DNA of 64,000 bases from Macrostomum lignano (GCA_002269645.1 NIVC01000696.1:124001-188000); one strand, 5' to 3'; numbered from the stretch's first letter, positions 6,153 through 62,903 are shown. The notes: generated from the letters alone by a model not told the origin. Numbers and translations: made by a program.

Positions 6153-6334
6153 ACAAATAACCTGGCCTGGCTACGTGCGAGAAAGCAATTTTTGAGCAAA
6201 GCTGTTAGTTTCTTCACAAGTAATTTGGTCCTCTAAATGACATTCTATGGCCAGGACTGAGTGATCAAAATACATGTAGCTCAGATGGGCTGGTTTGGTG
6301 ACACATCCAAAATGTCACACAAGATAAAAAATTG

Positions 6335-18383: not shown

Positions 18384-20239
18384 ATTTATTATATTTTAGC
18401 GCCACATATCAGACTATAGCGCCATACATTGGTGCTGGAGTCTTAATGTCAGATTTTCCTGACTTTGGAATTCGGCACCTATCAATTAGATCTGAACTCC
18501 AGTACTGTGTATGAGCAGTTCCATTCCAATTTAATTAGAAGGTGTGATCCAAGCCAACTGACCACGAGCCCCAGCTTCACACCCATGCGATTGGCCACAA
18601 TGCACAGTTCGGGACCCACAGGCCGTGGACATTCAGTCGAAGTGACAAGTTAAACAAATTGGCGTATGCCATACTGCGCTTGTGTATTCGAATCTCCCAC
18701 CTGAACTCAATTGGAAAACGTCAATAGGGATTTGAAATTTTAAGCGTTGTCATGGGGGCAAGTAAACTTATTGCATGGTGAAATTTCAATACTATTTATT
18801 ATTTTGATGGAGAGAAGTGTTACATATATATTAATAGAGTAGGTAGGATTAAGGTGCGAAGGCTCAGCATAGTTACCACAGATCATGTAAGGCAAGAATG
18901 AGAACAATAGGGAAGCTGCTATACTTGAGGATATTATATGAGCAATTTTGGTTGAGTGGACAATATCGCATGTATTCCCTATATATAGTGAGTTGAGTTG
19001 CCCGCATAACAAATGAAGTTCGATTTGATTTTTATAGAGAATTATAAACAGTATTAAAATGGTTTGGCGAGGTTGCCCCTGGGGTGGGATTTAATTTTTT
19101 AAAAAGAACGAGAGATAGCTGATGGATAAGTGGGAGGAGTTGATGAATTCATCATATATAGAGCCCAGCCCCCGCTGAGGTGGGAATATAGATAAGGTAG
19201 ACAGATAGGGTCATATTATAGAGGTGTCACAGGTCAAAACATCCTATTGAGAGTGTGAGAGGATGGCGCAACCCCTATGCATGTGCAGGTTAGCGTGCAG
19301 CCAACTTTGCAAGAACCGTTGATGCATACACTGTATAATACGGTAATGCGACAATTAATCCCCTTTCTCATGTTATATACACTGAGCCATATTTAGCCTT
19401 TGATTGTGCTGATTTCTCGTTCCACTCCCATGTGCCCAGCCATGCAGGACCAGCGCAGCGGGAGTTCCCATATCCAAATGATCCCGCAAATGGCTGATAA
19501 ATATACGCGGATTTGCATTCCGTAAATCTGAGCAGGACAAAACGGTACATAAGAACAGAAATACGTGGCTGATGTCTTTGACAAATTTATCATTTTTAAA
19601 TATACAGCATTCAATTTCAATGCATCGATTCGCATATACTCCGCGGATCTCAGGTTTCCATGAAATCCTGAAGGTGCCATGCCGGCTCCAACTTCTATAA
19701 CACTTCCTTTCGATGCCTTTTAGTGCTTTTCTAACTCGCACAATTCACAACAACCGAAGTTCGTCAGACGAGGCTGCAGTTAAGGCAGTGGAAATGAGGT
19801 CCGTTCCGCATCGCTCAGCCGCTGCAGGTGGGCTCCTCCTTCATCAAGCCTGTGCAATAGCTGCATGCGCAACTCCAATTGATTATATATGTGTATACAT
19901 TAAAATGCGCACGGGGCTTTCCTTTGCATGGGAAGTGCGGTGAAATGTGAGCGCTAAGAGGGTTCAAAGCTTGCTTGCATCTCGTATATGACCGCGGGCG
20001 TGTGATGCTGCTCTATCAGTTCCGGCGATGGAGCGACAGCCTCAGATGGAACTGAGAGCGTGAATTTCATGCAAATTAACCAAAACCCGTTTTTATTGAG
20101 CCGCACAGAGGCGGAGGGGAAGCTTTAGGTGGCTCAGCCACTTAGCGCTGGATTTATTCATAGAATCTCGTGAAACCTGCTTGCTGTGCCTTGAACTTTT
20201 ATCTATGAAGGCAATGTCTGTGCCAGAATCTTAATTCGG

Positions 20240-20945
20240 GTGAATCTCATTTTGATTGAATCTCATTTCGGGTGAGTCTCATTTCGGGTGAGTCTCATCT
20301 CAGGAGAATCTCATCTCAGGTCAATCTCATCTTAGGTGAGTCTCATTTCAGGAGAATCTCATTTCAGGTGAGTCTTATTTTGGGTGAGTCTCATTTTGGG
20401 TGAGTCTCATTTCAGGTGAGTCTCATTTTGGGTGAGTCTCATTTCAGTAGAATCTCATCTCAGGTCAATCTCATCTTAGGTGAGTCTCATTTCAGGAGAA
20501 TCTCATCTCAGGTCAATCTCATCTTAGGTGAGTCCCATTTCAGGAGAATCTCATTTCAGGTGAGTCTTATTTTGGGTGAGTCTCATTTTGGGTGAGTCTC
20601 ATTTTGGGTGAGTCTCATTTCAGGTGAGTCTCATTTTGGGTGAGTCTCATTTCAGGTGAGTCTCATTTTGGGTGAGTCTCATTTCAGGTGAGTCTCATTT
20701 TAGGTGAGTCTCATTTCAGGAGAATCTCATCTCAGGTCAATCTCATCTTAGGTGAGTCCCATTTCAGGAGAATCTCATTTCAGGTGAGTCTTATTTTGGG
20801 TGAGTCTCATTTCAGGTGAGTCTCATTTTGGGTGAGTCTCATTTCAGGTGAGTCTCATTTTAGGTGAGTCTCATTTCAGGAGAATCTCATCTCAGGTCAA
20901 TCTCATCTTAGGTGAGTCTCATTTCGGGTGAATCTCATTTAGGGT
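20240..20945. repeat. 15-bp minisatellite (GGTGAGTCTCATTTC/TT)
   Basis: ~15-nt period with variant units. Confidence 0.95.
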
Positions 20946-26039: not shown

Positions 26040-28695
26040 TTCTGTCTGACACAGACACGACTGTCTGACACAGACACAACTATCTGACACAGACACGACT
26101 GTCTGACACAGACACAACTATCTGACACAGACACGACTGTCTGACATAGACACGACTGACACAGACACGACTGTCTGACACAGACACAACTATCTGACAC
26201 AGACACGACTGTCTGACATAGACACGACTATCTGACACAGACACGACTGACACAGACACGACTGTCTGACACAGACACAACTATCTGACACAGACACAAC
26301 TGTCTGACACACACGACTGTCTGACACAGGCACAACTGTCTGACACAGGCACAACTGTCTGACACAGACACAACTTTCTGACACACAGACACGACTGTCT
26401 GACACAGGCACAACTGTCTGACACAGACACGACTGTCTGACACACAGACACGACTGTCTGACACAGGCACAACTGTCTGACACAGACACAACTATCTGAC
26501 ACAGACACAACTGTCTGACACACACGACTGTCTGACACAGGCACAACTGTCTGACACAGGCACAACTGTCTGACACAGACACAACTTTCTGACACACAGA
26601 CACGACTGTCTGACACAGGCACAACTGTCTGACACAGACACGACTGTCTGACACACAGACACGACTGTCTGACACAGGCACAACTGTCTGACACAGACAC
26701 AACTTTCTGACACACAGACACGACTGTCTGACACAGGCACAACTGTCTGACACAGACACGACTGTCTGACACACAGACACGACTGTCTGACACAGGCACA
26801 ACTGTCTGACACAGACACAACTTTCTGACACACAGACACGACTGTCTGACACAGGCACAACTGTCTGACACAGACACGACTGTCTGACACAGACACGACT
26901 GTCTGACACACAGACACGACTGTCTGACACACAGACACAACTATCTGACACAGACACGACTGTCTGACACATAGACATGACTGTCTGACACACAGACACA
27001 ACTATCTGACACAGACACGACTGTCTGACATAGACACGACTATCTGACACAGACACGACTGACACAGACACGACTGTCTGACACAGACACGACTGTCTGA
27101 CACAGACACGACTGTCTGACACACAGACACGACTGTCTGACACACAGACACAACTATCTGACACAGACACGACTGTCTGACATAGACACGACTATCTGAC
27201 ACAGACACGACTGACACAGACAGGACTGTCTGACACACAGACACAACTATCTGACACAGACACGACTGTCTGACACACAGGCACAACTGTCTGACACAGA
27301 CACAACTGTCTGACACAGACACAACTGTCTGACATAGGCACAACTGTCTGACACAGACACGACTGTCTGACAGAGGCACAACTGTCTGACACAGACACAA
27401 CTATCTGACACAGACACGACTGTCTGACACAGACACAACTATCTGACACAGACACGACTGACACAGACACGACTGTCTGACACAGACACAACTATCTGAC
27501 ACAGACACAACTGTCTGACACACACGACTGTCTGACACAGGCACAACTGTCTGACACAGGCACAACTGTCTGAACCAGACACAACTTTCTGACACACAGA
27601 CACGACTGTCTGACACAGGCACAACTGTCTGACACAGACACGACTGTCTGACACACAGACACGACTGTCTGACACACAGACACGACTGTCTGACACACAG
27701 ACACGACTGTCTGACACAGGCACAACTGTCCGACACAGACACAACTTTCTGACACACAGACACGACTGTCTGACACAGGCACAACTGTCTGACACAGACA
27801 CGACTGTCTGACACAGACACGACCGTCTGACACACAGACACGACTGTCTGACACACAGACACAACTATCTGACACAGACACGACTGTCTGACACATAGAC
27901 ATGACTGTCTGACACACAGACACAACTATCTGACACAGACACGACTGTCTGACACATAGACATGACTGTCTGACACACAGACACAACTATCTGACACAGA
28001 CACGACTGTCTGACATAGACACGACTATCTGACACAGACACGACTGACACAGACACGACTGTCTGACACAGACACGACTGTCTGACACAGGCACAACTGT
28101 CTGACACAGACACGACTGTCTGACACACAGACACGACTGTCTGACACACAGACACAACTATCTGACACAGACACGACTGTCTGACACATAGACATGACTG
28201 TCTGACACACAGACACAACTATCTGACAGAGACACGACTGTCTGACACATAGACATGACTGTCTGACACACAGACACAACTATCTGACACAGACACGACT
28301 GTCTGACATAGACACGACTATCTGACACAGACACGACTGACACAGACACGACTGTCTGACACAGACACGACTGTCTGACACAGGCACAACTGTCTGACAC
28401 AGACACGACTGTCTGACACACAGACACGACTGTCTGACACACAGACACAACTATCTGACACAGACACGACTGTCTGACACATAGACATGACTGTCTGACA
28501 CACAGACACAACTATCTGACACAGACACGACTGTCTGACATAGACACGACTATCTGACACAGACACGACTGACACAGACAGGACTGTCTGACACAGACAC
28601 AACTATCTGACACAGACACGACTGTCTGACACATAGACATGACTGTCTGACACACAGACACAACTGTCTGACACAGACACAACTGTCTGACACAG
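26040..28695. repeat. 19/21-bp minisatellite (CTGTCTGACACAGACACGA), ~2.65 kb
   Basis: 19-nt base period with 21-nt variants; 293-bp higher-order blocks near 27865-28500. Confidence 0.97.
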
Positions 28696-29464
28696 ACACC
28701 ACTCCCGGACTCCCTGCTTGAACCTGAGTACATACGAGCATATTGAATAAAAAAGCAAAAACGACGTCAAACCCTTAAATAAAAAAAGTATCTTAGAAGA
28801 GTATTTTACTTTTTTCAAAACGGGACAGCAAAAAAAGAAAAAAGTCAGTTTAACTTTGGCAAATGACTGCACAATACTGACCATAAATTCAGACACAAAT
28901 TATTAATGGTTAGTAAAAATCAACAATTAACAGGTGTCGCATTTATTCTGGTTTGAAGAGAGGCAAAGCAATAAATAAAAGGATTATATGAATAAAATTG
29001 GCGAGCACACCGCTGAGGCGGCACGTCAGGAATAATATAATTAAATGAGTGACTCCCAATCATATAAGCAGCACAATTAACAAAAAGGAACTGAAGCTTC
29101 ACAAACACTGGAGAATGAAATTGCACAAAAACTGGCACTAATTTATATATTTGCTTTATATAGTAATGAGAGAGTAGTCTAGTAAAGAAAAATGGAAGCG
29201 ATTAGATCGATGGTATATAGACAGGAAAAAGGCCAAAGGCTTATATAACTTCTTAATAAAATTTAGCTTAGTAAAACCTACTACTACTTACTTGCAGTAG
29301 TCTCAGTTAAAAAAAGATATTCCACTCAAGAAAATAGTAAAGAAAAAGCATATACCTTTAAATTATAGTTAAAAAACACACACTGCTCTACTAGAGCTCC
29401 ATTGAGCAGACTGTAGCCAGCCCTCAGCGCTGGTCCGTGGTCTCAGAGTAGTTAAAAATGGTGC

Positions 29465-30864: not shown

Positions 30865-32060
30865 TCTTTTAAATGTTCCAATGTTTCAAATCTCATCCTG
30901 ATGTTTCTAAATCTCATTCTAAAGTTTCCAAATCTCATCCTGATGTTTCTAAATCTCATTCTAAAGTTTCCAAATCTCATCCTGATGTTTCTAAATCTCA
31001 TTCTAAAGTTTCCAAATCTCATCCTGATGTTTCTAAATCTCATTCTAAAGTTTCCAAATCTCATCCTGATGTTTCTAAATCTCATTCTAAAGTTTCCAAA
31101 TCTCATCCTGATGTTTCTAAATCTCATTCTAAAGTTTCCAAATCTCATCCTGATGTTTCTAAATCTCATCCTAAAGTTTCCAAATCTCATCCTGATGTTT
31201 CTAAATCTCATTCCTAAGTTTCCAAATATCATCCTGATGTTTCTAAATCTCATCCTAATGTTTCCAAATCTCATCCTAAAGTTTCCAAATCTTAATGTGA
31301 TTTTTCCAAATCTCAATGTGATTTTTCCAAATCTCAATGTGATTTTTCCAAATCTCAATGTGATGTTTCCAAATCTCAATTTGATGTTTCCAAATATCAT
31401 CCTAAAGTTTCCAAATCTCAATGTGATGCTTACAAATTCTCATCCTAAAGTTTCCAATTCTCAATGTGATGTTTCCAAATCTCAATTTGATGTTTCCAAA
31501 TCTCAATGTGATTTTTCCAAATCTCAATTTGATGTTTCCAAATCTCAATTTGATGTTTCCAAATCTCAATTTGATGTTTTCCAAATCTCAATGTGATGTT
31601 TCCAAATATCATCCTAAAGTTTCCAAATCTCAATGTGATGCTTACAAATTCTCATTCTAAAGTTTCCAAATCTCAATGTGATGTTTCCAAATCTCATCCT
31701 AAAGTTTCCAAATCTCAATATGATGTTTCTAAATCTCATCCTGGTGTTTCAAAATCTCATACCGATGTTTCCAAAGCTCATCTTGATGTTTCCAAATCTC
31801 ATTCTAAAGTTTCCAAATCTCATATTGATGTTTCCAAATCTCATTCTGTTTCCAAATCTCATCCTGATGTTTCCAAATCTCATCCTAAAGTTTCCAAAAT
31901 CTCATCCTGATGTTTCAAAATCTCATCCATCCTGATGTTTCCAAATCTCATCCTGATGTTTCAAAATCCCATCTTGATGTTTCCAAATCTCGTCCTGGTG
32001 TTTTAAAATCTGTTTCTCATGTTTCAAAATATCATCCTGATTTTTAAAAATTTCATCCAT
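30865..32060. repeat. 21-bp minisatellite (TTTCCAAATCTCATCCTGATG) with 42-bp dimer periodicity
   Basis: 21-nt period; perfect 42-bp block at ~30890-31200. Confidence 0.95.
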
Positions 32061-33942: not shown

Positions 33943-34590
33943 TCAGCTAGACAGTTCTACAGAAGAGGCGGCTGGGGCACGAGGCTGAGCTCCATCCGCA
34001 TTGTTTGCATTATCAGCAGCGGCTAAGAACTCGCCTTCACCGTCCAGCATTCTGGGCAGCTCGCGCAGCAGATAATCTTCAAGAGATGGCGCCGTGTACC
34101 GATGCCCGCCAGTCTTGTACAGCCGCGCCAAGCGAGACAGACAGGCGTTCAGCGCTAGGAAGGCATCAAGGCTGAGCGACATTCGATGCACAGAGCGGGA
34201 TAAGCGCGATTTCAATAAAGCAATTAGGCGAGAGATGAACTGCGGATTAAACTGATGTTTGTAGATAGTGCTGAGCGCTACAATCAGCTCGAACTGGTCA
34301 ATGCTGCCAGACCGATCGTGGTCCTGGTCAAGAAACGTCATGGACCATTCGTGCAGGAATGAGCGCAGCTCAAGAAATTCGCCAAATTCTAATTGGCTAT
34401 TTCGAGCGTGCGTGTCGAAGATGCGAACCAGCAGGCGACAGGTGGGCTGGGTGAATGGCTTGCAGGCCGGGCTGAGAAGGCCGCAGCGCAGCTCCTGGGC
34501 GCTGATCAACCCGTCGCCATCAATATCCATCAGGTCGAACCATTCGCGAGCCTCGGCAGCATCTCGGTCCATAGTGCAAGCTGCAGTCAT
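33943..34590 (-). CDS. Penta-EF-hand protein C, intronless CDS, 215 aa
   Basis: EWFDLMDIDGDGLISAQEL...CRLLVRIFD...DHDRSGSIDQFEL...LDAFLALN...LEDYL; collinear with PEF-A and PEF-B. Confidence 0.85.
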   Translation of the reverse strand: MTAACTMDRDAAEAREWFDLMDIDGDGLISAQELRCGLLSPACKPFTQPTCRLLVRIFDTHARNSQLEFGEFLELRSFLHEWSMTFLDQDHDRSGSIDQFELIVALSTIYKHQFNPQFISRLIALLKSRLSRSVHRMSLSLDAFLALNACLSRLARLYKTGGHRYTAPSLEDYLLRELPRMLDGEGEFLAAADNANNADGAQPRAPAASSVELSS

Positions 34591-38382: not shown

Positions 38383-38620
38383 GCGAATCCAAGTCAAAAC
38401 GGCCACACGCAAAAAACGGCCTCTCACACAGAACGGCCACACCGTCAAAACGGCCATCACGTCAAAACGGCCATCACGTCAAAACGGCCACATACAACAA
38501 ATTTGGATGGCCGCACCATCAAAGCGGCCACACATAACAAATTTTTATAAGGTGTTGACACAGCGTTAGTTTATTTCGTCATACAATGTGCAAATATGTT
38601 TATATATGTGGAAATATATT
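38383..38620. repeat. GTCAAAACGGCCAC subterminal-type repeat block; partly duplicated at 39325-39475
   Basis: Five or more AAAACGGCC words; the stretch to GTTAGTTTATTTCGTCATACAATGTGCAAATATGTTT recurs ~870 bp downstream; probably the end of the FLYWCH element (inference). Confidence 0.7.
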
Positions 38621-39112: not shown

Positions 39113-39725
39113 AGAATAGAGTGATATGATAGCTTTTACAGTTTGCATTTTATTGTAATTTTAATTGCCACTTTTTGCATTTGCCACAATAAAATGAGTA
39201 GTGATGATCTAGCTGTGTCCGCTATGCTCATGCATTGTGCGACCGCGTCAGCACGCACTTTTTTTTGTGATGGCTGTCAGAGGTGGCATCATTGCTGTGT
39301 CTGACTGGTATACTCAGCAACATCGGCCACACCGTCAAAACGGCCACACGTCAAAACGGCCACATATAACAAATTTTTATAAGTTGCGTATGCGTAAGTT
39401 AGTTTAGTTGAGTTGAGTTAGTTGAGTTAGTTTAATGTTAGTTTATTTCGTCATACAATGTGCAAATATGTTTCTAAAGTTATCTAATTAAGTCTTTACG
39501 CTAACGTGTCAAGTTATTCGAGTTATTATATAGGTACTTGCTTACAGTCCAATGTTTAGACTTCGTAAGAAATTGCAGATCGGATTCGAAATTCAACTTG
39601 ATAAGAAACGCAGAGGACAATTTCGAATAAGTTTGCGAACAAATGTACATATTTAAACGAATGTGCGCCACAAAGTAAAATTAAAATTTGTAAAATCAGT
39701 TAAATTAGGTTGATGTCCTATAATT

Positions 39726-40398
39726 TCAAATGTCCGCAACCTCCTGCTTGAGCAGCTGCCACTGCTCGGGAGTGAGTGAGTCAGTGAGTAAAATGAGTAG
39801 GTGGGTCGGAAATAGTTTACTTATGCTGACTCGATCGACTATTTCAGCAGCTGGTCGAAACAGCTCGTTTCTGCCTGCTGCACGCAGTGCTGCACGGAGC
39901 TGCACATTTTGCAGCGTTTGGCGTACAGGGTAGTGATTGTGTTCGGCGTCACCGCGCTTGAATCCGTCGGCAGTTTGAATGACGCTGGCCGGGCACCTTG
40001 TCGTTGTGTTGCGCACACGCTGCACCGCCAGTAGGTTCTCGCTCCACGTGCCGACTTCTTTACGAAGGTGTTGCTATAGGAGGACACAACCTTCATCCTC
40101 CCTTTTTGGGAGCCTTGTGCCACAATGTCAAATGTCTCTGGCTCCTTTGACGACACACTCGACATTAAAGCGTGTAGAGTCATGGTTCGTCTATTGTGAA
40201 CTCTGGCTCAACCTCCGGCTCCTGCAGCGCTTTGCTTTCAGCGATGGGAAAGATTGTGCCATCAATCGTCTGCAGATGGCACGATGGAAAGTGACTCATG
40301 TGTCGTGTCACTCGTATCACCCATACTGACACTCTGACACTCTGATACTGACACTCACCTCAGCAAAAATGTCGTCCGCCTCTTCAGCAGCAGCAGCA
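39726..40398 (-). pseudogene. FLYWCH-domain transposase relic (Mutator-like), frameshifted
   Basis: Joining two frames gives EPETFDIVAQGSQKGRMKVVSSYSNTFVKK..RTYWRCS/VRNTTTRCPASVIQTADGFKRGDAEHNH, i.e. the F..Y..WRC..C..HNH pattern. Confidence 0.7.
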
Positions 40399-40399
40399 G

Positions 40400-40471
40400 C
40401 AGCACAGCTTCCAGACCGCCAAGCGGTGTGCTGGGGAACCTAGCCGAGGATGTCTAGGTACGAAAGGAAGC
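40400..40471 (+). ncRNA. Putative HDV-like self-cleaving ribozyme at the LINE 5' end
   Basis: P1 CAGCAC/GTGCTG, P2 GCTTCC/GGAAGC, P3 ACC/GGT, L3 GCCAAGC, P1.1 CC/GG, P4 ACCTAG/CTAGGT, J4/2 ACGAAA with C at 40461; 2 extra nt between P2 and P3. Confidence 0.7.
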
Positions 40472-40597
40472 ATACTGAAGCCGAACATCCAAGAAAGGAA
40501 CATTCACCATCGGAGGAGACCGAGGTCGCACCACCGTAGTACGGGCACCGGCACCGGCACAGTGAGAGGCAGCGCCTACAGGCCCTACAGAGCCGAC

Positions 40598-40648
40598 AGC
40601 AGGACCCTGCTGCTCAGAGCAGGCGACGTCGAGAGCAACTCGGGACCA
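40598..40648 (+). other. 2A-like (StopGo) sequence SRTLLLRAGDVESNSGP, one substitution from DxExNPGP
   Basis: agc agg acc ctg ctg ctc aga gca ggc gac gtc gag agc aac TCG gga cca; in frame with the first Cys pair of PHD1. Confidence 0.8.
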
Positions 40649-40669
40649 GCCAACACTCAAAGCTCCCTC

Positions 40670-41929
40670 TGCGGACTCTGCAGCAAACGAGCAAACGGGC
40701 CCTCGCTGCAAGGACTGCGAAGACCACCTTCACCTTAAGTGCAGCGGCCTGACTAGAGGAAGGTTCTACGCGCTGGAAAAGGCTGGCGACTGGACAGGTC
40801 CGTGCTGCCAAGGCAGCCGGCCAACCGCCAGCACCCCTGGCAAGGAGTAAGGGGCGCCGAGGCCCACGAGCGGCAAGCGACGAGGCGAGCAAAGAGCGAC
40901 GAGCGGCACGCCGTGCAAGCCAACCGAGACCCATGGCGACCAGGAGAACGAACGAACGAACGAACGAACGATCATGAGAACGAACGACCAAGAGATAGAA
41001 CCGTGGCCAGGGAACAACATCATCTGGGCCAAACTCAGGGGCTGGGCTTGGTGGCCGGCCGAGCGCCTGCAAGCGGAAGACGCGCCAGCCGCGCTCAGCC
41101 GCACTGCGCATGGCAGCAACGACGTGCCGGTCAGCTGGTTTGGCACCGGGCAGGTGTCCTGGATCAGGAAGGACAGCATCAGACCCTTCAGCAGGGAAGC
41201 CGGGTGCAGCAAGGCGGCGTCTGCCAGGCTACGCCAGGCAGTCGAGCTGGCCACAGCCGCCTTGGACAGGAAGGAAAGCCAGACGGCAGGAGCTGCGGAA
41301 GGCAGCATCGAAATACCGAGATCTGAGAAGGGCACGGAGGCGGGCAGGAGTGAACTCGAGAGCCTCAGCGAGGAGCGAGCCAGCACTATCAACTCGCCTG
41401 CGGAGAGGAGGACACTGAAGTCGATGACAGCCGGGAGAATCCGCCACCCAACCCAAAAACTAAAAAACCCGGCGGAACCCCGACGCCCGACCAAGTTGTC
41501 CCGCCAAGCAGGTCGAGCTACTGCGGCAAATGCGACCGCAAGATCAGGGCAGGCCATAACGGCATCCCGTGCACGCAGTGTGCCAGCGTCTTCCACCGCG
41601 CCTGTACGACAATCTCTCGCTGGAGACCAGCTGACGGAGCTAGCTGGATCTGCCAGCCCTGCGCCGTCAACAACAGATGCATGCAAGCCGAAAGCACAGC
41701 GGAGGCAGGACCATCCCACCGGCCCCGTCCAGTCCGGACCAGCTTGGAGGGCCCGCCCGCCGCTGCGAGGGCAGGCCGGTGTGCGGAATGCAAAAGGTAC
41801 AGGAGGAGAGGGCAAGGGGCCGAATGCAAGAACTGCGGCAAGAAAGTTCACTGGTCCTGCTGTCACAGCACCTACACCCGGAAGCAAGTCGAAGGACTGA
41901 AACGACGCGGCTGGACCTGCAACGAATGT
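40670..41929 (+). pseudogene. Chromatin-reader array of the LINE: PHD1 (40670-40808), PWWP (~40998-41190), PHD2 (41522-41662), PHD3 (41780-41929)
   Basis: PHD1 CGLC../CKDCEDHLHLKC..WTGPCC; PWWP IIWAKLRGWAWWPA...VSWFGTGQVSWI; PHD2 CGKC..CTQCASVFHRAC..WICQPC; PHD3 CAEC..CKNCGKKVHWSC..WTCNEC. Confidence 0.85.
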
Positions 41930-42054
41930 GCCCACGAGGCGGCGGCCAAGCCGGAGGGCACTGCACTCCCACCCACACCACCAACTGCGGCCCAGGCAAA
42001 GCCGGCAGGAGGGCATCAGAGGCCGGTAGGGCGCGTCAGAGGACAGTCGAACAG

Positions 42055-42745
42055 CAAGCTTACTATCATCCAATGGAACTGCGACCACTTCAAAGCCAAG
42101 GAGCCGGAACTCAGGGAGCTCGTGAGGCAGCAGAAAGCCGACGTCATTATGCTGCAAGAGAGCAAACTGAAGGCCGAGGACGAACTGATCGCCTGGCCAG
42201 CCTACACAGTGCTACGCGCTGACCGCAACCGGCACAGGCAGCATCACAGCGCGAGAGGAGGAGGCCTGGTGACCATCATCCGGCACGGGCTACGATTCGA
42301 AAGGATACAGACGCCAGTGACCAACTCGCCGCTAGAACTGCTCGGCGTCAGGCTCTACCTGGAGGCACACAGCGGGCAGGGCCTGGAACAACTACTGCTG
42401 ATCAACATTTACATTCCGCCTCAAGCGACCTGCAGCATGACAGCCACTGAGCTGCTGCAGATCCCAAGCGGCGAGAACCTGCTCCTGGCCGGCGACTGGA
42501 ATGCGCACCACGAGCTGTGGGACAACAGCTCCCCCAGGGACAGACGAGGCGAAGAGCTCGTCGACTGGATGGACGACCAGCTGCTGGCGGCGCTTAATGA
42601 TGGATCCACCACGCGAACCAGCCGTGACGGGGAGCACAGGTCTTCGCCGGACGTGACCATAGTCCCACAGGCGGAGCTAGACCAGTGGGAATGGCGGACG
42701 GCGAACAGGTTGAGCTCCGACCACCTGCCGATCATCATCAGCCGC
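42055..42745 (+). pseudogene. Apurinic-type endonuclease domain of the LINE
   Basis: IIQWNC, MLQESKL, NIYIPP, AGDWNAHH, SPDVT, SSDHLPI motifs. Confidence 0.92.
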
Positions 42746-42791
42746 AGGGAAGCGAACTCGGACCCGGACCCCAGCACTAGCTAGGAAGAAC

Positions 42792-45070
42792 ATGTGCTGG
42801 AACTGGAAGAAGGCGGACTGGCCGCTGTACCAACATCTGGTCAGGGAACATCTCAGGAACTCGAACCTCCAGATTCTCAGCAACTCGGAGCATGAAGAGC
42901 AGCTGCGAAGGTGCCTTGTGAAGGCGGCCCGCAAGGCGGTGGGCATGGTGGCCAGGAAGACCAGAAACGCGGTGTTCGTCGACGAGGAAGTCCAGCACCT
43001 GATGGCGGAAAGAGATAACCTCAGGGAAAGAGAGGGTATCGAGTCGGATGAAGGGAAGCACCTGGACCAACAGATCAGGAGGAAGCAGCAGGAGAGCAGG
43101 AGGGAACGATGGAGAGACAAGTTGGACAACAGTGCAACGGCGGACAAGATATGGTCACTGCTGAAACAGCTCAACGGCGCGGCGCCGCCCCAGAGCAGAG
43201 ACCAGATCCTAGAGCACGAAGGAAGAAGGTACAAGTCGAACAGAGCCAAGGCGAACATCATTGCGAAAGTGTACGCCAAGGTCAGCGCCAACACCGTCCG
43301 GGCCAGGCACAGATGGGCACGCAGAGAAATTAACGCCCGCCTGCGGCAAAGCGCCACTTCCCCCAATGCTGCGGACTGCCAAGCCCTGACCCTGGACGAG
43401 CTGCAAGCTGCGCTGCAGAGTATGGACGCCAACAGAGCCGCCGGCATGGACGGCCTCCACCCGAAGCTGCTGAAGGCGCTCCCCCGGGAGGCGCTACATG
43501 AGGTCCTAAGGCTGTTTAACCGGTTATATGACGGCGGCTTCGCTCCACAAAACTGGCGCACGGCCCGCATCACCGCTGCTTAAGAGCGGGAAACCCGCTA
43601 AGGACATAGGATCATACCGGCCGGTCAGCCTGACATCCAGCCTCGGCAAGTGGATGGAACGGGTGCTTGCGAACCGCATCAAGCATGTTCTTGAGTCCTC
43701 CTGCGGCCTCAGCGAAGCACAAGCGGGGTTCAGAGGAGGCAGGTCCACGGAAGACCAACTGCTCCGCCTGTCCCAATCGATCGACGACGCATTCCAAAAG
43801 CGGAAACTGACGGTCCTGGCGCTGTTCGACTTTGCGCGCGCCTTTGACAAGGTCTGGCGAGACGGGCTGCTGATCAAGCTACTCAACGCGGGCATTGGCC
43901 CGAAAACGGTCAGATGGATACAGGGCTGGCTAGAGAACAGGCTGGCGTGTGTCCGGGTTGGAGACGTCGACAGCAAGCGGGAACTTTTCCAGCAAGGGCT
44001 ACCGCAGGGCTCTGTGCTGTCGCCGCTGCTATTCATCGTCTTCATCGACGACCTCCTCAGGGAACTAGACTCAATCCCGGACCTGCAGGTTAGCGGCTAT
44101 GCGGATGATCTGGCCACCTGGACCAGCAGCAGAAGAGCCGCGGAGGCCTCGTCCACCCAGCAGGCGGCGGTCAACGTCCTGCAAGCTTGGAGTGAAGCAT
44201 GGCTGCTACCGGTTGCCACGGAGAAGTGCTCGCTCACCCTCTTCTCCAGCGACCCGGTGATGACCCCACAGAGGGCGGCGGCCCCGAACGTGGTGCTACA
44301 AGGACAGCCAATGCAATGGATCGAGGAGCAGCCTACATTCCTCGGGCTTACGTTTGATAGACAGCTGAGGTTCACAGCGCACGCGGACAACGTGATCCGC
44401 AACTGCCGGAACCGCCTCAACCTGCTGCGGCGCCTCGCGGGCAGCTCCTGGGGCTGGCAAGCCGAGCTCATCCGCAACACCTATATCGCCCTCATCCGCA
44501 GCAAACTGCTCTACGGGGCCTGTGCCTGGACGCCGTGGCTTACTAGCGCGGCCTGGCGTAAGCTCGAAGTAGTGCAGCGTAGCGTGGAGCGCATCATCAC
44601 CGGAGCGGTCGCTACCACCCCTGTTGAGGCCCTACGCTGCGAGAGCGGGCTACTCTCGATCCGGAACCAATGTGAAGTGATCTGGAACACAAAGCTGGAC
44701 CGGTGGCTCAGGCTTGAGACCAGTTCGCCAAGATACCGCCTTGGCAGCCAGCAGACCAGGCAAAGGCTGAAGAGGCAAGGCTGGAGAGTTCAGGCCAGCA
44801 GAGGTCTCGCCAACGCCGGCCTAGCCGAGGTGGCGAGGCTCGAGGACGCGACGGACCTCCCCCCTTGGCAGAGCTGGAGGGACAACATCACCTTCCTCGT
44901 CTCAACCGATGATGCAAGGCAAGAGACACGCGACGGCAATCTCGAGATGGCCCAAACGAGGATCAAGCAGGCCAGCCACGACCCCGACATCATCATCTAC
45001 ACGGACGGGTCGGTGCAGAAGGAGGGCGGTGGCAGCGGAGTGGTCATCTACCGGAAGGGACGCCTAACAG
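42792..45070 (+). pseudogene. Reverse transcriptase and N-terminal RNase H of the LINE (frameshifted)
   Basis: AAGMDG, SYRPVSLTS, QAGFR, FDFARAFDKV, LPQGSVLSPLLF, YADD; RNase H IYTDGS at ~44995. Confidence 0.93.
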
Positions 45071-45257
45071 CTAGGAGAACAAGTCGGCGTTCAGACCAGC
45101 CTCCGGAGGGCAGCCGGGCAGCCGGCCTCCTCGCTGCAAGCCGAGCTTACCGCCACCTTAACGAGCACCCGGAGGAGGCGCTAAGGTACTGGGCCTGGTA
45201 CCGCACACGGTGGAAAAGGAACGCATGGGATGTTCGCGCCTCAGCGACAACAACAAC

Positions 45258-45460
45258 GGGGTGCTGCACGGGGTGCACACAGCACAGGAGCTGCAGCAGC
45301 AGCAATGTCGGCAGCAGCAGCAGCTGCACGCGGTGCTGCACGGGGTGCACATGGCACAGTGCACTCCAAGCACTTCCACTCGAAGTGGTCTTGCCTTCGG
45401 AGCAGAGTGTATTTCTTTGCGGTGATGGCAGCATGTCAAGCGTATCAGTGTCTACCGTTT
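45258..45460 (-). pseudogene. Probable upstream (PHD-like) part of the FLYWCH transposase relic, separated from it by the LINE
   Basis: Minus frame H..ITAKKYTLLRRQDHFEWKCLEC then an Ala-rich linker that resumes as AAAAEEADD on the other side of the LINE; contains stops. Confidence 0.45.
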
Positions 45461-48400
45461 GAACGACCGCGCCCTGTTAAAGACCGCTCACCTACGACAA
45501 CGACTACCCTCCCCCCGGAATTGAGGACCCCGGCAGACGGAGTATCAATGAGAAAAAATCGATTCAAACTAGTCAGTGCAACTTTCCGGCTTTACTCGTG
45601 CCGAGATAAGGAAGGCGGCAGTTCAAAGTTCAAAGGCCGATACCCTTGCCATATTTTGCCTAGGCTTTCATATAACATATTTTTTTACAATAATCGCCAA
45701 ACATTTACACAAATTTCACGCAATACTTGTCTTTTTTTAATTCCTTACTTTTATTACTTCGTTAGTCGTTAAAGCTCCTTCAAAGTTTCGTTTATAACAT
45801 TTACGCGCTCTTTCAAATACTATATTGCAAAACTCGTAGATGGGTCGTTCTCAAAGTTTAGTCGTAAGCAGTGAAACAAATATTTTTGAAAATCAGCCTG
45901 AAATATTGAATCTTTTCTTATTTTAGCTCTAAAAGGACTTAAAAAATATATGCCTCTCATGGGTCTTAATCTTTTTTAACATTGAACTTTTGATGTTAAT
46001 CTCATCAGAGTGCGCTATTTCATTTTTCGATATATATTTTTATTATCGCACGAGCTATAATACCCACTTTAGAGAAGCTACATTCTGTTCACGTGGTCTT
46101 ATTAAAGAAGAAAATTGATAAATTTTATTTATAACTTTGGTTAACACAACCTAGAACCCATTTAACTCTTTCGATTGCAAAGCAGATGTTGCTATTTCGA
46201 TTTTTGCTAGAAACGTAACATTATGAATGATTAAAAATGCACTTTTAATTAATTTGTTCTGTTGATAGAATAAGCTAATAGCTGCGTTTTCTGCTGTTTT
46301 TTTTAAGAAAGATAGTCATATCTAACACTAAAGTATCAATTAAGGCAGTTTCATTCTATATTAAAAAAGAAAAGTTAAATAAATTCAATTTTAAGTTTTT
46401 TTCAATAGCACAAAATTAACCTAACAAAGAGAGATTTCGCTGACTACAACAAAGCAAGTAGCACCAAAGTTATTTTAATTTAAAGTCCTCATCTGTGGGA
46501 TGAGAAAAAGTACCACTTTTTTGTCTCTAGTTATGAAAAAAAAATTTCTCAGCATATTGTTAGGTTTTTTGGATGTTTTTTATGTACGCTCGTATTTAGA
46601 TGAATTTTTGCTATTAATCACCCAATATGTTAGTCAGAACAAACAGAATTTCATTTATGTAGATAAAATTGACTATTTTTCTCTTAAAAACAGTCGTTTT
46701 TTGTTGTTTTCACACAATTTTTTTAACTGATTTAAAATTTGTATTGTAAGTTACAAGTAAACATAATGAGTCAAAACAAGAGGTAGTAGAAACTGAAAAG
46801 AAAATAAGAGTAACGAATAATAAAAAAGTTGCATGATTTGATTAGTCAAGAAATAGTATAAAAACAATTTTGCATCTGATTTATTATCTATGAAGTTAGC
46901 TGTCTGAAGCACAAAAAATTAATTTCTTTGAAACATTAAATTCATTCTCATATGTTCTGCAATTCATTAAAGATATATATGTAGCAACTTAAACATTCAG
47001 TTGATACTTTCCACCTTTGGATGCATATAGCTACTAACAAGAAAAAAGACAAAAGAAAAAACTTAATTGCCATTGATGCTGGCAATGTAATATTAAATAT
47101 GGTACAGAAAGATGGAATCTCTACAGAGTGCTGCCACACGAATTTGTGAAGTGTTTAACAGATTAGTCATGGCAGTACCATAACAGACATACTATATTTT
47201 ATATTACTCTTCGATTGACAATTACGCTTTAGATATGTTTTAGATGATGATTTTCCATTGGGACTGACTCTATATACCGAGGCCAGACACAGTTAAGTGC
47301 GGCTGACAGCACTGAAGCGGCGGTTAACAGAGAATGCGATGAGCTGTGGCCTGTGGAGACAGCCAGCTGATGTACGAGCATCAGTAAAAGGGAAAGACAT
47401 CCAATAGTGTCTTGCTATTGGTTTGTTACATGTACAGCGAACATCTACTTTTATTCTAATGTGATCGATTTAATTCTACTGACCCAATTGGCTAAAGCAC
47501 TGTAAACTGCACACCTCTCGGACGGATATGTAATGCCATTTGCTGCACTTTTACCTGTTTCTCTGCCAGAACACCAGCATCATTGTATGTGCCACAATGC
47601 TAAGATGTGCAGTGGTCCTTTGGATGTGGTTAGTTCTGCAGGCATCGACGTAATTTATCAAATGAGACGAATTGTATACCGAGCATGACAGCTAGTGCAG
47701 GGCCAGAATCGATTACAGAGGTTCGCCAGAGCAATTGCAGTGATCCATGTGGCTGCCGAGTCAGACGTCTGTAATAGGCTAATTAACTTACCAAGACCAA
47801 AGTATTTAATTTAAATTTATAAGCTGTTCTTTTAGTAGTTATGCAGCATAAGAAAATAGTATAGTAAAATAGTAAAATAGTATTAAAGCTATGTTGCAGA
47901 ATATAAATGCTTGCTGAATTATTTTTAAAAAAAACGCAAGTCTGTTCGAAAAAAGATACATGCATTTTAGGTTTTAAAAGAAATGGCTTCCTAGCTCGTT
48001 TACTATATATATTCTAATTCAAAAAAACTTTTAATGCTTTAAAAGACATATTTTGCAAGCCTAATTTTTAGCTAAACCAGTTTTGTATATTTTAAGCATC
48101 ATATTTCGGTGTTTAAGTACAATATTAAATTCTTGAGTGGTACAATATCAATTATTTCGGGTGTTTCTTGTTACGCGATAATTTTAAATACAAGCAATTT
48201 ATACGAAAAAAACAAAATGTTGATTTAAAAATAACATTTTCTATTGAAATAATACTTATTAAATAGTAAACATAGAATAAAAGATGTATCTAATTTATAA
48301 AAAAATAAAAGAAAACTTGCATTATTTCACAATTTTTGGTCGTTTTATTTTCCGTTGCGAAAAATAACAAATTGCTAGATTTCGTCTTAAATATTTGGTT

Positions 48401-52964: not shown

Positions 52965-53270
52965 AATATAGTAGGGGCAGCTATGATAGCAGGCATGCCA
53001 TGCAAAAATCATATCAATGCCTAACTATTACAGGTATAGTAGGGGCAGCTAGGATAGCAGGCATGCCATGCAAAAATCATATCAATGCCTAACTATTACA
53101 GGTATAGTAGGGACAGCTAGGATAGCAGGCATGCCATACAATAATCATATCAATGCCTAACTATTACAGGTATAGTAGGGGCAGCTAGGATAGCAGGCAT
53201 GCCATACAATAATCATATCAATGCCTAACTATTACTGGTATAGTAGGGGCAGCTAGGATAGCAGGCATGT
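52965..53270. repeat. 68-bp minisatellite, ~4.5 copies, ending at the IGF2BP-like ATG
   Basis: GCAGGCATG recurs with its ATG at 52995, 53063, 53131, 53199 and 53267. Confidence 0.95.
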
Positions 53271-53842
53271 CCAACGAGAAGGAAACATCAGCAGCGGCAG
53301 CCAATGGAGGCCAGTCTAGTCCACAGAGCGGTGGCAGCGCCAATGTAAAAAAGAGTCACAGAATTCGTGTCACTGGAGCCAGCGGCAAGCAAGAGGACAA
53401 AGATTTAGAAGCAATGTTTGCCAAGTTTGGCAAAGTTCTTAAAATCGAGCCGCACAATTATCAAGATGGCATCCTTGTCGTTTCCATGGAGACTGTTGAT
53501 GTTGCCAACAAGGCCGTGGCGGAAGTAAACGGTGCGGAGTTCCAAGGCTCCAAGCTCACTCTTAACAACGACTCTGCCAATCAGAGGCGCCAAAATGGCA
53601 ACAATGTGCCAAGTCAGCGCCGAAGCGGCCCGCCAGTTCAGGCGCCCCAACTGAATAATCCAATGCAAGTTCGCGACTTCTATCCGGTCCGCATACTGGT
53701 TAACTCCGACCTGATTGGCGCCATCATTGGCAAAGGCGGCGAAACTATTAAAGAGATTACTAACCGTTCCAAGGCCAGGATTGACATTAAACGCGAGGTT
53801 GTTACTAAAAATATTCCGCCTAGAAAGGTGCAAAATAGTCAG
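53267..53842 (+). CDS. IGF2BP: IGF2BP/Imp-like RNA-binding protein, exon with one RRM and the start of KH1
   Basis: RRM-like IRVTG..LEAMFAKFGKV..VNGAEFQG; KH YPVRILVNSDLIGAIIGKGGETIKEIT; donor CAG|gtaaag in phase 0. Confidence 0.8.
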
Positions 53843-53994
53843 GTAAAGCCCGCTTCCTTGGTACTTGGGTTTTTTATGTGGTTTGCAGATGTCATAAAAA
53901 CATCCAGGATGCATTTTGATGCAGGAAAGCATCAAGAGTCAGTAAATTGCACCAGAATGGAGCCAGATCGTAGTGCAAAACTTTCAGAAAATAA

Positions 53995-54500
53995 CAGTAG
54001 TGCTGCAGGCACCCTGGCGAAACGCCTTCGGCGACATGGTCCTATGGTCAGCCCTGAAGCGATTCTGCCCATACAAGCACGTACAAGCTCGCCAACACTG
54101 TACGCAGGCACGCACTCATGCACACGCTCACACAGGGTGTACAGCGGCCCTGACTATCTAATCGTCAGGCATGTGCACTCTCTGTGCCTTGGGGGTTTGG
54201 CCCATACATGCGCAACTGCTGGCCGACCTGGCCGATCTGGCCACCGTAAATTGTGGTGGACCAGGGGTAAGTCGCAAAAATACCCACCCCTAAGAATACA
54301 GACGTAGTACTAATTAGATGACGAGGCATTTAGCCCTTATAAGACTGTCATAGTTACTCCTGCCGTTTACCCAAAATTGCGTTAATGTTGCTCTTGAGTT
54401 TCACAGGTAAGTCGCATGGCCAGTGTAAATCAGGGGGGTTGCGCATGTATGGTTTGGCCGTCATGGTTGTGAATCGCATGGCAACCCCCGGCCAGTCTTT
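53995..54500 (-). mobile_element. tRNA-derived SINE copy (minus) in the IGF2BP intron, interrupted by MITE C
   Basis: Reverse complement contains GGCCAAACCCCCAAGG...GGGCCGCTGTACAC. Confidence 0.7.
54203..54451. mobile_element. MITE copy C with the 28S cassette; TIR CATACATGCGCAAC, 8-bp TSD GTTTGGCC
   Basis: Perfect TIRs; TSD at 54195-54202 and 54452-54459; 28S segment at 54309-54372 (minus), 53/56 identical outside the central 8 nt. Confidence 0.92.
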
Positions 54501-55134: not shown

Positions 55135-55980
55135 TTGTGGTACAGTCTGGGCTGCTGCAGTAGGCATCTGGTACTACAGTCTGGGGTGCTGCAGTAGGCA
55201 TCTGGTACTACAGTCTGGGCTGCTGCAGTAGGCATCTGGTACTACAGTCTGGGCTGCTGCAGTAGGCATCTGGTACTACAGTCTGGGGTGCTGCAGTAGG
55301 CATCTGGTACTACAGTCTGGGCTGCTGCAGTAGGCATCTGGTACTACAGTCTGGGCTGCTGCAGTAGGCATCTGGTACTACAGTCTGGGCTGCTGCAGTA
55401 GGCATCTGGTACTACAGTCTGGGCTGCTGCAGTAGGCATCTGGTACTACAGTCTGGGCTGCTGCAATAGGCATCTGGTACTACAGTCTGGGCTGCTGCAG
55501 TAGGCATCTGGTACTACAGTCTGGGGTGCTGCAGTAGGCATCTGGTACTACAGTCTGGGCTGCTGCAGTAGGCATCTGGTACTACAGTCTGGGCTGCTGC
55601 AGTAGGCATCTGGTACTACAGTCTGGGCTGCTGCAGTAGGCATCTGGTACTACAGTCTGGGCTGCTGCAATAGGCATCTGGTACTACAGTCTGGGCTGCT
55701 GCAGTAGGCATCTGGTACTACAGTCTGGGCTGCTGCAGTAGGCATCTGGTACTACAGTCTGGGGTGCTGCAGTAGGCATCTGGTACTACAGTCTGGGGTG
55801 CTGCAGTAGGCATCTGGTACTACAGTCTGGGCTGCTGCAGTAGGCATCTGGTACTACAGTCTGGGGTGCTGCAATAGGCATCTGGTACTACAGTCTGGGG
55901 TGCTGCAGTAGGCATCTGGTACTACAGTCTGGGGTGCTGCAGTAGGCATCTGGTACTACAGTCTGGGCTGCTGCAGTAGT
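55135..55980. repeat. 34-bp minisatellite, ~25 copies, filling an IGF2BP intron
   Basis: GGTACTACAGTCTGGGCTGCTGCAGTAGGCATCT period. Confidence 0.97.
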
Positions 55981-57714: not shown

Positions 57715-58480
57715 TGGTCTGCGACTGCCACCCTTCCGGTTATTGGTCTGCCACCCCTCCAGTCATTGGTGATCTGCCACCCCTCCGGTTATTGGTGATC
57801 TGCCACCCCCTCCAGTCATTGGTGATCTGCCACCCCCTCCAGTCATTTGTGATCTGCCACCCTCTCCAGTAATTGGTCTGCCACCCCTCCGGTCATTTGT
57901 GATCTGCCACCCTCTCCAGTCATTGGTCTGCCACCTCTCCAGTCACTTGTGATCTGCCACCCCCTCCAGTCATTTGTGATCTGCCACCCCTCCGGTCATT
58001 TGTGATCTGCCACCCTCTCCAGTCATTGGTCTGCCACCTCTCCAGTCATTGGTGATCTGCCACCCCCTCCAGTCATTTGTGATCTGCCACCCCCTCCAGT
58101 CATTCGTGATCTCCCACCCCCTCCAGTCATTCGTGATCTCCCACCCCCTCCAGTCATTGGTGATCTCCCACCCCCTCCAGTCATTGGTGATCTGCCACCC
58201 CTCCAGTCATTCGTGATCTCCCACCCCCTCCAGTCATTCGTGATCTCCCACCCCCTCCAGTCATTGGTGATCTGCCACCCCTCCAGTCATTCGTGATCTC
58301 CCACCCCTCCAGTCATTCGTGATCTGCCACCCCCTCCAGTCATTGGTGATCTGCCACCCCCTCCAGTCATTGGTGATCTGCCACCCCCTCCAGTCATTGG
58401 TGATCTGCCACCCCCTCCAGTCATTGGTAATCTGCCACCCCCTCCGGTCATTGGTCTGCCAACCCCTTCCAGTCATTAAT
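57715..58480. repeat. 27-bp minisatellite (GGTGATCTGCCACCCCCTCCAGTCATT)
   Basis: 27-nt period with short indel variants. Confidence 0.95.
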
Positions 58481-58917
58481 GGTCTGCCACCCCTTCTTGT
58501 CGTGGATTTTATTACTGTAATAAAACTCATAAAATTATCTGAGCTTAGTGGCCAAGTGGCCTTGCCTCAGATTAAGATAAGGTAAAATTTAAAGTGTAGG
58601 TTAAACCGTTAATTTGCCACTCGTAGGTTAAATAAGTAAGTTCAATGCATACGAGCTAGTTATGAAAATTAGCCGAAAATTGCGCCCTCAAAATGTATCC
58701 GGACTAGCCAATCCCAGTGATAAATGTTCTAAACATATAGATCTAGATCTAGATAGATACAGATCTAAACAGCAGGATGTTGACTATTTTGATGCAATCG
58801 ATTTCCAATTGAGCTAGAATGCCGGATGTTGGATTTCGTTGTATATAAAAAAAGAAAATTTGACTGCAGTTATTTGCTTTAGACTGAGCTGGAAATTATT
58901 CAAACACTGGCCGAGCA

Positions 58918-60985: not shown

Positions 60986-62292
60986 TCACTCACTAGCTAG
61001 CCTAGCCAAGAGTTTCCCATTACCATTGTTAATCTGTTCTTGCATACGAGTATAAACAGCTGTATTATCAGCCTGTCCAGCATCAGTTGATGAGGCAGCT
61101 CTAAAAGCGTACAGCGCCCCAGTTGAGTCAACGCCAATCACGAAGCCGTAGTCAGCCAGCTGGCCAACATACCGAACTGCGGATGGGTAAATGCCACTAA
61201 TGCTGTAGCAAAATGCATCAGCTGCTTGCAGCGACTCAAACAGCTGGCTGAGCCGGTCTGCACTGCACCGAGCTGGCAGTCGGCAGCGTCGCCTGTGAAT
61301 CGAGGCCAGATCCGAGTAGGTCGGCATCGCTGGCGGTGGAGCTGCGACGTCACTCGCTTGATCAGCCGGCTCGGGTCTCGGCCGCTTCGCCGATCGCGGC
61401 TTGTCGCCGACTGGAGCAGCTTCCAAATCCGGTTGGAGTCGGCGTCTTGGCACCGGGGACTCGGCCAGATGATCTGCCACTGAACTGTCTTCTCTGCTGT
61501 TGTCGTCTATCGCGGTTAGGTCGATAAGCTGCTGCATCAGGTCTGCCCCGCCGCCGCCTCCTTGCATCGCAACAGCAGTTGGGTCAAAAATATCAACTGC
61601 AGACGGCATCGGCTGCTGCTGCTGCTGCTGCTGTTGCTGATGCTGCTGCTGCTGCTGCTGTTGATGCTGCTGCTGTTGATGCTGATGCTGCTGCTGTTGA
61701 TGCTGTTGCTGATGATGCTGCTGTTGTTGTTGCTGCTGATGCTGCTGTTGTTGCTGCTGCTTTTGATGCTGCTGCTGTTGATGCTGTTGCTGTTGCTGCT
61801 GTTGTTGCTGAGGCTGCTGCTGTTGTTGCTGATGCTGCTGCTGTTGCTGCTGTTGATGCTGCTGCTGCTCAGTTTGATCAGGCGATTCCGCAGATGGAGC
61901 CACCGGAGATGTCGGCAAGTGGCTCTCAGCAGCTGCACCAGCAGCATCAGCTCTGACATCCTTGTTGTAGGCATTACTAACAATTGAATCAGGAGCATTA
62001 TTATTATTAGCAACTACTATGTCTGCAGTAGTAGCAACAGTATTCGACACGGTAGCTAACGATTGATTTGGCACAGTATCCAATAGCATAGTTCTAATAG
62101 ATTCTAGCACAGCGGCTTCATTAGCTAGGCCTATTTGAGTCTTGGCTGCGTTCAAGTTCACATCGAGAGCATCTGCTGGCAGTTCAATTGACAGAACGCA
62201 CACGGGCAGCTTGGTTGGCACGCCGAATGCAGAGGAGATTGTAGAACGAATCATTTTCACGAGCTTAGCTGACTGTACTGGGCGTCTGTTGA
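60986..62292 (-). CDS. PMS1: PMS1 exon 2 (transducer domain, long polyQ linker, short C-terminus)
   Basis: Acceptor tttgcag|TC gives FI/VNRRPV; DVNLNAAKTQI resembles the MutL DVN motif. Confidence 0.82.
61613..61867 (-). repeat. 85-codon Q/H-rich coding tract in PMS1
   Basis: CAG/CAA interrupted by CAT and occasional CCT/AAG. Confidence 0.92.
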
Positions 62293-62439
62293 CTGCAAAT
62301 TAATTTGTTTCATATCTTCAGTTATGCTAGCTAGGTGCATTGATTGATAGAGGCTTAAGTGTCTGGATTGGCTTGTGCTAATCTTGCGACTCAAGGTTAC
62401 TCAAGTGAAAAAGGCTGGTAGGTCGAAAAATCGGGTCAT

Positions 62440-62860: not shown

Positions 62861-62903
62861 GTCACACGCTGTTTAACACTGAAATGATCAATATTTTACT
62901 CAC

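Follow-up and report, generated by a model that had tools for sequence, protein, structure and literature searches.

We analysed a stretch of 64,000 nucleotides of Macrostomum lignano DNA (GCA_002269645.1 NIVC01000696.1:124001-188000; the window, in what follows), with emphasis on an element of the plus strand at approximately 40400–45450. The reading that we favour, with moderate confidence, is that this element is a single dead copy of a non-long-terminal-repeat (non-LTR) retrotransposon, or long interspersed nuclear element (LINE), of the apurinic/apyrimidinic endonuclease (APE) type; that it belongs to the kind in which a single open reading frame (ORF) encodes a 2A peptide, PHD fingers, APE, reverse transcriptase (RT) and RNase H; that a PWWP domain was joined to this ORF in its lineage; and that the resulting array of chromatin readers would aim nicking. 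Three-frame translation and Pfam searches revealed, in this order on the plus strand, a short leader, a 2A-like peptide, PHD1, PWWP, PHD2, PHD3, APE, RT and a truncated RNase H. The initial annotation of this DNA had proposed the order PHD-PWWP-PHD-PHD-APE-RT-RNase H, with which both methods agree, and its limits were exact, running from the first Cys of PHD1 (CGLC, 40670) to the last Cys of PHD3 (CNEC, 41929). As a description of the element it was right about the order, and it had overlooked the 2A peptide, at least six lesions, the truncation of RNase H and the fact that the backbone had already been described. The features of the element are as follows:

40369–40603, plus strand: probable 5' leader of the ORF, with an ATG at 40369 in another frame, a CAG run and a broken frame; its 5' end is imprecise
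40604–40648, plus strand: 2A-like StopGo peptide, TLLLRAGDVESNSGP, with the canonical NPGP mutated to NSGP in the window copy
40670–40808, plus strand: PHD-like finger 1 (C4HC3, ending in GPCC), split by a frameshift near 40697–40705
40848–40850, plus strand: in-frame TAA stop between PHD1 and PWWP, a lesion
40946–40971, plus strand: (GAAC)6 microsatellite within the coding linker ahead of PWWP
41016–41297, plus strand: PWWP domain, beta-barrel at 41016–41264 and C-terminal helix to 41297
41357–41510, plus strand: PWWP-to-PHD2 frameshift interval (single −1/+2 shift, both frames open), with an A-rich run at 41452–41468
41522–41662, plus strand: PHD finger 2
41780–41929, plus strand: PHD finger 3
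42065–42748, plus strand: APE endonuclease (Exo_endo_phos_2, 74.9 bits; Exo_endo_phos, 63 bits), to which relatives align by tblastn
42780–43574, plus strand: APE-RT linker, conserved according to tblastn of relatives and shifted to another frame
43573–44985, plus strand: reverse transcriptase (RVT_1, 128.4 bits), with YADD at 44098–44109
44986–45220, plus strand: N-terminal remnant of RNase H (IIIYTDGS...; weak Pfam RNase_H match, 12.8 bits), frameshifted after ~45050
45221–45560, plus strand: decayed, CAG-rich 3' part, with a 32-nt repeat at 45256–45287 and 45328–45359

The element forms a block with sharp edges, 60–66% GC and a strong excess of A over T on the plus strand, set in host DNA of 23–38% GC (30–38% in the immediate flanks). 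This GC content and skew set in near 40400 and are even across 40400–45400, PWWP included; host values are regained by ~45600. A leader also precedes the 2A peptide in the related elements described below, and in one of them (L006) it is fully open and ~115 aa long. An ORF and translation scan upstream of the element found no ORF1-like frame, and the architecture (2A, APE, RT and RNase H, no ORF1) is compatible with the Ingi clade, which combines RNase H, a single ORF and 2A. The APE motif QWN and the catalytic motifs QESK, GDWNAHH and SSDH are present, and the linker at 42780–43574 matched no Pfam family. At the 3' side, relatives align by tblastn to 45048–45219 and then run 100–230 aa further, indicating that the C-terminus of RNase H is missing here. 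The two units of the 32-nt direct repeat in the 3' part are 91% identical, lie 72 nt apart and are accompanied by CAG runs.

The element carries at least six frame-breaking lesions in addition to the mutated 2A and the truncated RNase H. Frameshift sites were located in PHD1 (40697–40705), at 41357–41510, at 42782–42790 (with a stop adjacent), at ~43573 and after ~45050. Given the mutated 2A, the in-frame stop, at least five frameshift sites and the truncated RNase H, the window copy is inactive.

The PWWP domain runs for ~95 codons without an internal stop. It matched Pfam PF00855 with 54.1 bits (E = 2.3e-14, cut-off 25.6) over profile positions 2–92 of 93, so that the profile significance on which the initial annotation had made its proposal depend was confirmed. 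An AlphaFold model based on an alignment of 34 homologues reached a mean predicted local distance difference test score of 89 and a predicted template modelling score of 0.75, and showed a barrel of five strands (residues 10–14, 20–25, 44–49, 55–59 and 63–65) followed by helices at 68–74 and 78–102. When this model was compared with known structures using Foldseek, the top 50 listed matches were all PWWP structures, with NSD3 PWWP2 and DNMT3A/B PWWP occupying ranks 1–12, and 110 matches had E ≤ 0.001. At the sequence level, phmmer against the PDB placed NSD2/NSD3 PWWP2 (E from 8e-11 to 4e-8) and a tandem DNMT3B PWWP construct (2e-8) ahead of single DNMT3A/B domains (3e-5 to 5e-4), with LEDGF, ZMYND11 and MSH6 lower down. 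The aromatic residues noticed at the cage positions by the initial annotation turned out to be Trp at all three of them: GWAWWP (41040–41057) provides those in G-W and W-W-P, and SWFG (41133–41144) provides the third. In the phmmer alignment, these three Trp align with F236, W239 and W263 of DNMT3B, which form its methyl-lysine cage (PDB 5CIU). On the strength of the model and these alignments, the PWWP domain is genuine, with a full fold and a complete aromatic cage; its binding to H3K36me2/3 or to DNA is only predicted.

The initial annotation had also called three PHD fingers, a claim that the Pfam PHD profile (PF00628, cut-off 24 bits) sustains in part. PHD2 scored 26.6 bits, above the cut-off; PHD3 alone scored 22.8 bits, slightly under it, and PHD1, bridged across its frameshift, 16.6 bits, also sub-threshold. 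PHD2 and PHD3 taken jointly reached 31 bits. All three have C4HC3 spacing with a Trp 2–3 residues ahead of the last Cys pair, and C1_1 appeared as a weaker competing Pfam match on the fingers. The three fingers of the window align with fingers of related elements, PHD1 matching finger 1 of L005, L001 and L002 in every alignment column.

The 2A motif of the window copy, LLLRAGDVESNSGP (DVESNSGP), shows a Pro-to-Ser change within NPGP. At the same position, seven of the eight related elements have canonical motifs of the form D(V/I)ExNPGP (DVEQNPGP, DVERNPGP, DIEVNPGP, DVEENPGP, DVEANPGP and DVETNPGP), and the eighth, L003, has DVKRNPGP; the motif lies at 635 in L001, 757 in L002, 250 in L005, 450 in L006, 416 and 4939 in the two elements of L008, and 4810 in L009. 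Judging from this comparison, the ancestral 2A motif of the window element was very probably intact.

We then considered whether the PWWP domain is part of the element. As the initial annotation had stated, the C-terminal half of PHD1 and PWWP share one frame, interrupted solely by the TAA at 40848–40850, and PHD2, PHD3 and APE lie within another, open from 41357 to 42781. Since only one stop and one indel separate PWWP from its neighbours, it is plausible that PHD-PWWP-PHD-PHD-APE-RT-RNase H was one ancestral ORF. The composition of third codon positions was compared using Fisher tests. In PWWP the fraction of T (T3) was 0.06 and that of G or C (GC3) 0.80, similar to the rest of the element (T3 0.08, p = 0.69; GC3 0.77, p = 0.45) and different from the host ORFs of the window, a small sample of four (T3 0.26, GC3 0.55; p ~1e-6). 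This match with the element and not with the host disfavours the recent pick-up of a local host exon.

An origin of the PWWP segment foreign to the retrotransposon (an exon of the host, an unrelated element nested here or a join made in assembly) could find some support in the lesions that lie on either side of it. We rejected these candidates on the basis of frame, strand, composition and the place of the segment between homologous fingers: it sits between finger 1 and fingers 2–3, sharing their strand and the reading frame of finger 1, its GC content, skew and codon composition are those of the element and not those of the 30–38% GC flanks, and no splice-like or repeat boundaries were seen around it. 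The chance that we leave to such an origin is very small. From its position between the fingers, the shared strand and frame, the even GC content and skew and the codon match, we conclude that, as far as sequence features can establish it, PWWP belongs to the element in the window copy.

To place the element among its relatives, the RT ORF was searched against protein databases. This search retrieved 424 proteins at E ≤ 1e-10, nearly all from metagenome assemblies, the best of them 45–52% identical; the named matches were from molluscs and an arachnid, at ~35% identity. The RT is 40–52% identical to metagenomic proteins that combine APE, RT and RNase H, and none of the 424 lists a PWWP domain. 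A look-up in public assemblies for exact matches to the RT ORF returned no record. Nine contigs were sampled from the relatives, on which eight elements have their 5' part covered (L001, L002, L003, L005, L006, two in L008, and L009). These eight come from marine metagenomes, have RTs 33–52% identical to that of the window, and in all of them a 2A motif precedes the PHD-like fingers, APE and RT. The contig L008, from Tara Oceans, contains two different related LINEs head to tail (299–4685 and 5095–9327), with one intact ORF of 1410 aa, and L006 has an intact ORF of 569 aa at 84–1793 that comprises leader, 2A, three PHD fingers and APE. These intact ORFs suggest that seemingly active relatives exist in marine eukaryotes.

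The stretch that separates finger 1 from the final two differs among these elements. An alignment of window positions 40562–42130 with L001, L002, L003 and L005 was used for this comparison. L005 and L006 have exactly three fingers, in one-to-one correspondence with those of the window, and their linker between fingers 1 and 2 measures 27 and ~55 aa, respectively, versus ~237 aa in the window; the same interval holds extra fingers in L001 and L002 and a poly-Ala tract in L003. These differences in content indicate that the stretch is a variable cassette slot, occupied by PWWP in the lineage of the window element. A hidden Markov model of PWWP built from the 34 homologues scored 108.6 bits on the window, and none of the six-frame pieces of the nine related loci produced a match. 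Since all eight of these more distant relatives are without PWWP, the domain is at best a lineage-specific gain.

According to the mechanism that we propose, a polyprotein would be made from the one ORF, and the 2A StopGo site would free the short leader, leaving reader array, nuclease and polymerase as one protein that would bind its own RNA. In the nucleus, PWWP would dock this complex on nucleosomes through its methyl-lysine cage plus DNA contacts, the mark being most likely H3K36me2/3, which its closest homologues (NSD and DNMT3) recognize, and the H3 tail would be read by the PHD fingers. Nicking by the adjoining endonuclease, and with it the start of target-primed reverse transcription, would then occur preferentially in marked chromatin, for example transcribed gene bodies. 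In the non-LTR elements whose targeting is understood (R2 and site-specific APE elements), the part N-terminal to the nuclease or within it sets the target. Chromatin-guided insertion is plausible, and would be analogous to chromodomain LTR elements and to the LEDGF tether of HIV integrase. The most specific form of the proposal, in which an active LINE lineage would possess its own LEDGF-like tether, with a cage-competent PWWP within a PHD array on the polypeptide of the endonuclease aiming target-primed reverse transcription at H3K36-methylated chromatin, is possible but doubtful.

Several results weigh against a PWWP-guided lineage. The family is known from one decayed copy only, and no second copy was found within the 64-kb window by tblastn and blastn. 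The PWWP+PHD module had no match at E ≤ 1e-3 among 5.8 billion proteins, and no close family member was found among these or among 1.84 billion representatives. A scan of JGI metagenomes with PWWP yielded 600 pattern matches, of which 0 were confirmed. As PWWP is absent from every one of the eight sampled relatives, selection on this domain in an active family can only be presumed. The ligands of the PHD fingers are not inferable from solved structures, the best PDB matches (PHF1, Pygopus, KAT6A and DPF3) having E values of only 0.05–0.1, and the codon comparison depends on the small host sample mentioned above. Finally, a poly(A) tail, a simple-repeat tail and a target-site duplication were looked for at the ends of the element, and none was convincing; this is expected for a damaged copy and is no argument against the LINE class.

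Part of this evidence bears on another explanation, namely that the window copy is a one-off chimera, formed by a template switch onto a PWWP-encoding cellular mRNA or by recombination, so that PWWP would exist only in this copy or in a few dead descendants and would never have been useful. The absence of the domain from all the sampled relatives and the failure to find a second copy bearing it agree with this explanation, as do the lesions that flank the segment (the TAA at 40848 and the frameshift at 41357–41510), the short A-rich run on its 3' side and the microsatellite on its 5' side. However, the third-codon composition of PWWP equals that of the element and differs from that of the host ORFs; the segment is sense-oriented and continues the frame of PHD1; cage and C-terminal helix are both present in a complete domain with uninterrupted codons; and this domain falls exactly in the slot that varies among relatives. 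The search for a donor gene also speaks against a one-off event. An exhaustive HMMER search with PWWP against the 1.84 billion representatives gave 99 matches (best E = 3.9e-14), none with similarity to APE or RT; eight of them, scanned by Pfam, were cellular proteins (NSD-like, multi-PWWP dehydrogenase-like and kinesin). The closest domains were 22–43% identical, the nearest of them ~25–39%, and this divergence leaves no evident donor. Taking both sides together, we regard a one-off chimera as unlikely.

It is also conceivable that the PWWP-PHD array had a function other than aiming insertion. Possible roles are to keep the ribonucleoprotein in the nucleus or bound to chromatin, to substitute for ORF1, or to blunt host silencing by competing with H3K36me-guided readers of the DNMT3 or NSD type. 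NSD and DNMT3 are the closest homologues of this PWWP. An ORF1 is lacking in these elements, and in related clades PHD domains form part of the ORF1 proteins (PMC3708506); in addition, the authors of a survey of chromatin proteins proposed that the capture of readers may help transposons to evade suppression (10.1101/2021.11.30.470311). On the other side, the array is directly N-terminal to the endonuclease within the same post-2A polypeptide, like the target-binding domains of site-specific non-LTR elements such as R2, an arrangement that does not separate the two functions. We consider a purely non-targeting role rather improbable, and the aiming of nicking by a lineage-specific PWWP continues to be the explanation that we prefer.

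Other features of the window were also recorded. Directly 5' of the element there is a GC-richer block on the minus strand (39726–40330) with an ORF at 39839–40183 that has a weak FLYWCH match (17 bits, cut-off 23.6); this block may represent a piece of a host gene or a second mobile element. Further upstream, a unit of 16–17 nt (GTCAAAACGGCCACAC) forms short tandem arrays at 38393–38492 and 39324–39364. The retrotransposon sits in an AT-rich interval between two host ORFs, one for a protein with KH and RRM RNA-binding domains (53267–54304, plus strand) and the other for an EF-hand protein (33943–34587, minus strand). A PMS1-type MutL homologue occupies 60986–63744 on the minus strand, with an N-terminal ATPase exon at 62896–63744 and a 424-aa ORF that includes a long low-complexity CAG/GCT tract (61612–61869); the best matches of the exon are animal proteins of diverse origin (insects, vertebrates, Trichoplax, jellyfish) and only 39–47% identical, which places the host at a distance from annotated genomes. 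More than 20 minisatellite arrays, with units of 16–40 nt and lengths of up to 2.7 kb, account for much of the window. Long ORFs within them were rejected as genes, as the one at 6459–7726 had only spurious low-complexity Pfam matches and the one at 26190–27167 had none. Examples of these arrays are:

1–525, 5124–5472, 6334–7981, 17194–18243, 20235–20940, 26042–28703, 30881–32058, 55141–55979 and 57747–58493: minisatellite arrays

The choice of insertion sites by LINEs is mostly poorly understood, and the targeting that is known operates through the sequence specificity of the endonuclease or through DNA-binding domains. To our knowledge, steering of integration by a histone reader that the element itself encodes is established only for chromodomain LTR elements, and a PWWP route only via host LEDGF, in the case of HIV. 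If the reading as a self-encoded LEDGF-like tether is true, no retroelement encoding a PWWP domain was known before this one, and it would be the first LINE shown to choose its targets by histone marks. A LINE with its own PWWP beside its nuclease would constitute a natural experiment in chromatin-guided target-primed reverse transcription, in which the N-terminal reader array would be a swappable cassette, and would serve as a compact model for engineering insertion tools that are templated by RNA and prefer particular chromatin. A one-off capture would still document how LINEs sample host reader domains. The interest of the element is that it makes chromatin-guided LINE targeting testable, within the limit imposed by one dead copy.

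The backbone of the element has precedents. APE-type LINEs of the Rex1, Crack, L2, L2A, CR1 and Ingi clades encode, in a single ORF, a 2A peptide close to the N-terminus, and some of them carry a PHD between 2A and APE, for example Crack-17_BF, CR1-1_BF and STR-24_SP; 2A is also found in Ingi-1_AC (Odon et al. 2013, PMC3708506). The window element shares with these LINEs the leader, 2A, PHD, APE and RT in one ORF and the lack of ORF1, as do its eight relatives, which add RNase H; it differs in ~210 extra residues, with a complete PWWP, between fingers 1 and 2, a domain that neither the described elements nor the sampled relatives possess. The 2A-PHD-APE-RT backbone was already described (PMC3708506), and for the PWWP insertion there is apparently no earlier description. 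The author of the initial annotation knew of no PWWP in a LINE, and our full-text literature searches likewise found no paper describing one in a LINE or in any other retroelement. In their survey of 172 eukaryotic genomes for fusions between transposons and chromatin domains, Grau-Bove et al. found Chromo and PHD to dominate and did not discuss PWWP fusions (10.1101/2021.11.30.470311). The rows for PWWP in the part of their fusion table available to us comprise plant CHD3-like remodellers and one jellyfish gene model, the latter with zf-CW, PWWP, APE and RT and, among those rows, the only protein that joins PWWP with LINE enzymes (10.1101/2021.11.30.470311). As represented there, this model differs from the window element in being an unvalidated multi-exon prediction with partial expression support, RTE/BovB-like, with neither a PHD array nor 2A. 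The zf-CW-PWWP pair is typical of host ZCWPW genes, and the jellyfish model may join, in one prediction, a host gene and a LINE next to it.

Chromodomain retrotransposons are a known case of a self-encoded reader that steers integration (cited in 10.1101/2021.11.30.470311). Like the chromoviruses (Ty3/gypsy elements with a chromodomain at the C-terminus of integrase, such as MAGGY), the window element has its own methyl-lysine reader of the Royal/chromo-like type beside the enzyme that attacks DNA. In contrast, chromoviruses are LTR elements that use an integrase, their chromodomain acts on H3K9me and its function has been demonstrated; the window element is a LINE that would use target-primed reverse transcription and a PWWP whose function is inferred. 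The integrase of HIV-1 is brought to transcribed gene bodies by the H3K36me3-reading PWWP of the host protein LEDGF/p75 (PSIP1). There, the PWWP tether resides in a host cofactor, whereas in the window it lies within the element's own polyprotein; as mentioned, the LEDGF PWWP is among the PDB matches of this domain. The PWWP2 of NSD2/NSD3 and the PWWP of DNMT3A/B are the best matches in sequence and fold and share the three aromatic cage positions, and in NSD proteins a PWWP likewise follows PHD fingers. The identity to these domains is only ~25–37%, and the window PWWP, unlike them, is found outside a SET or methyltransferase context, next to the enzymes of a LINE.

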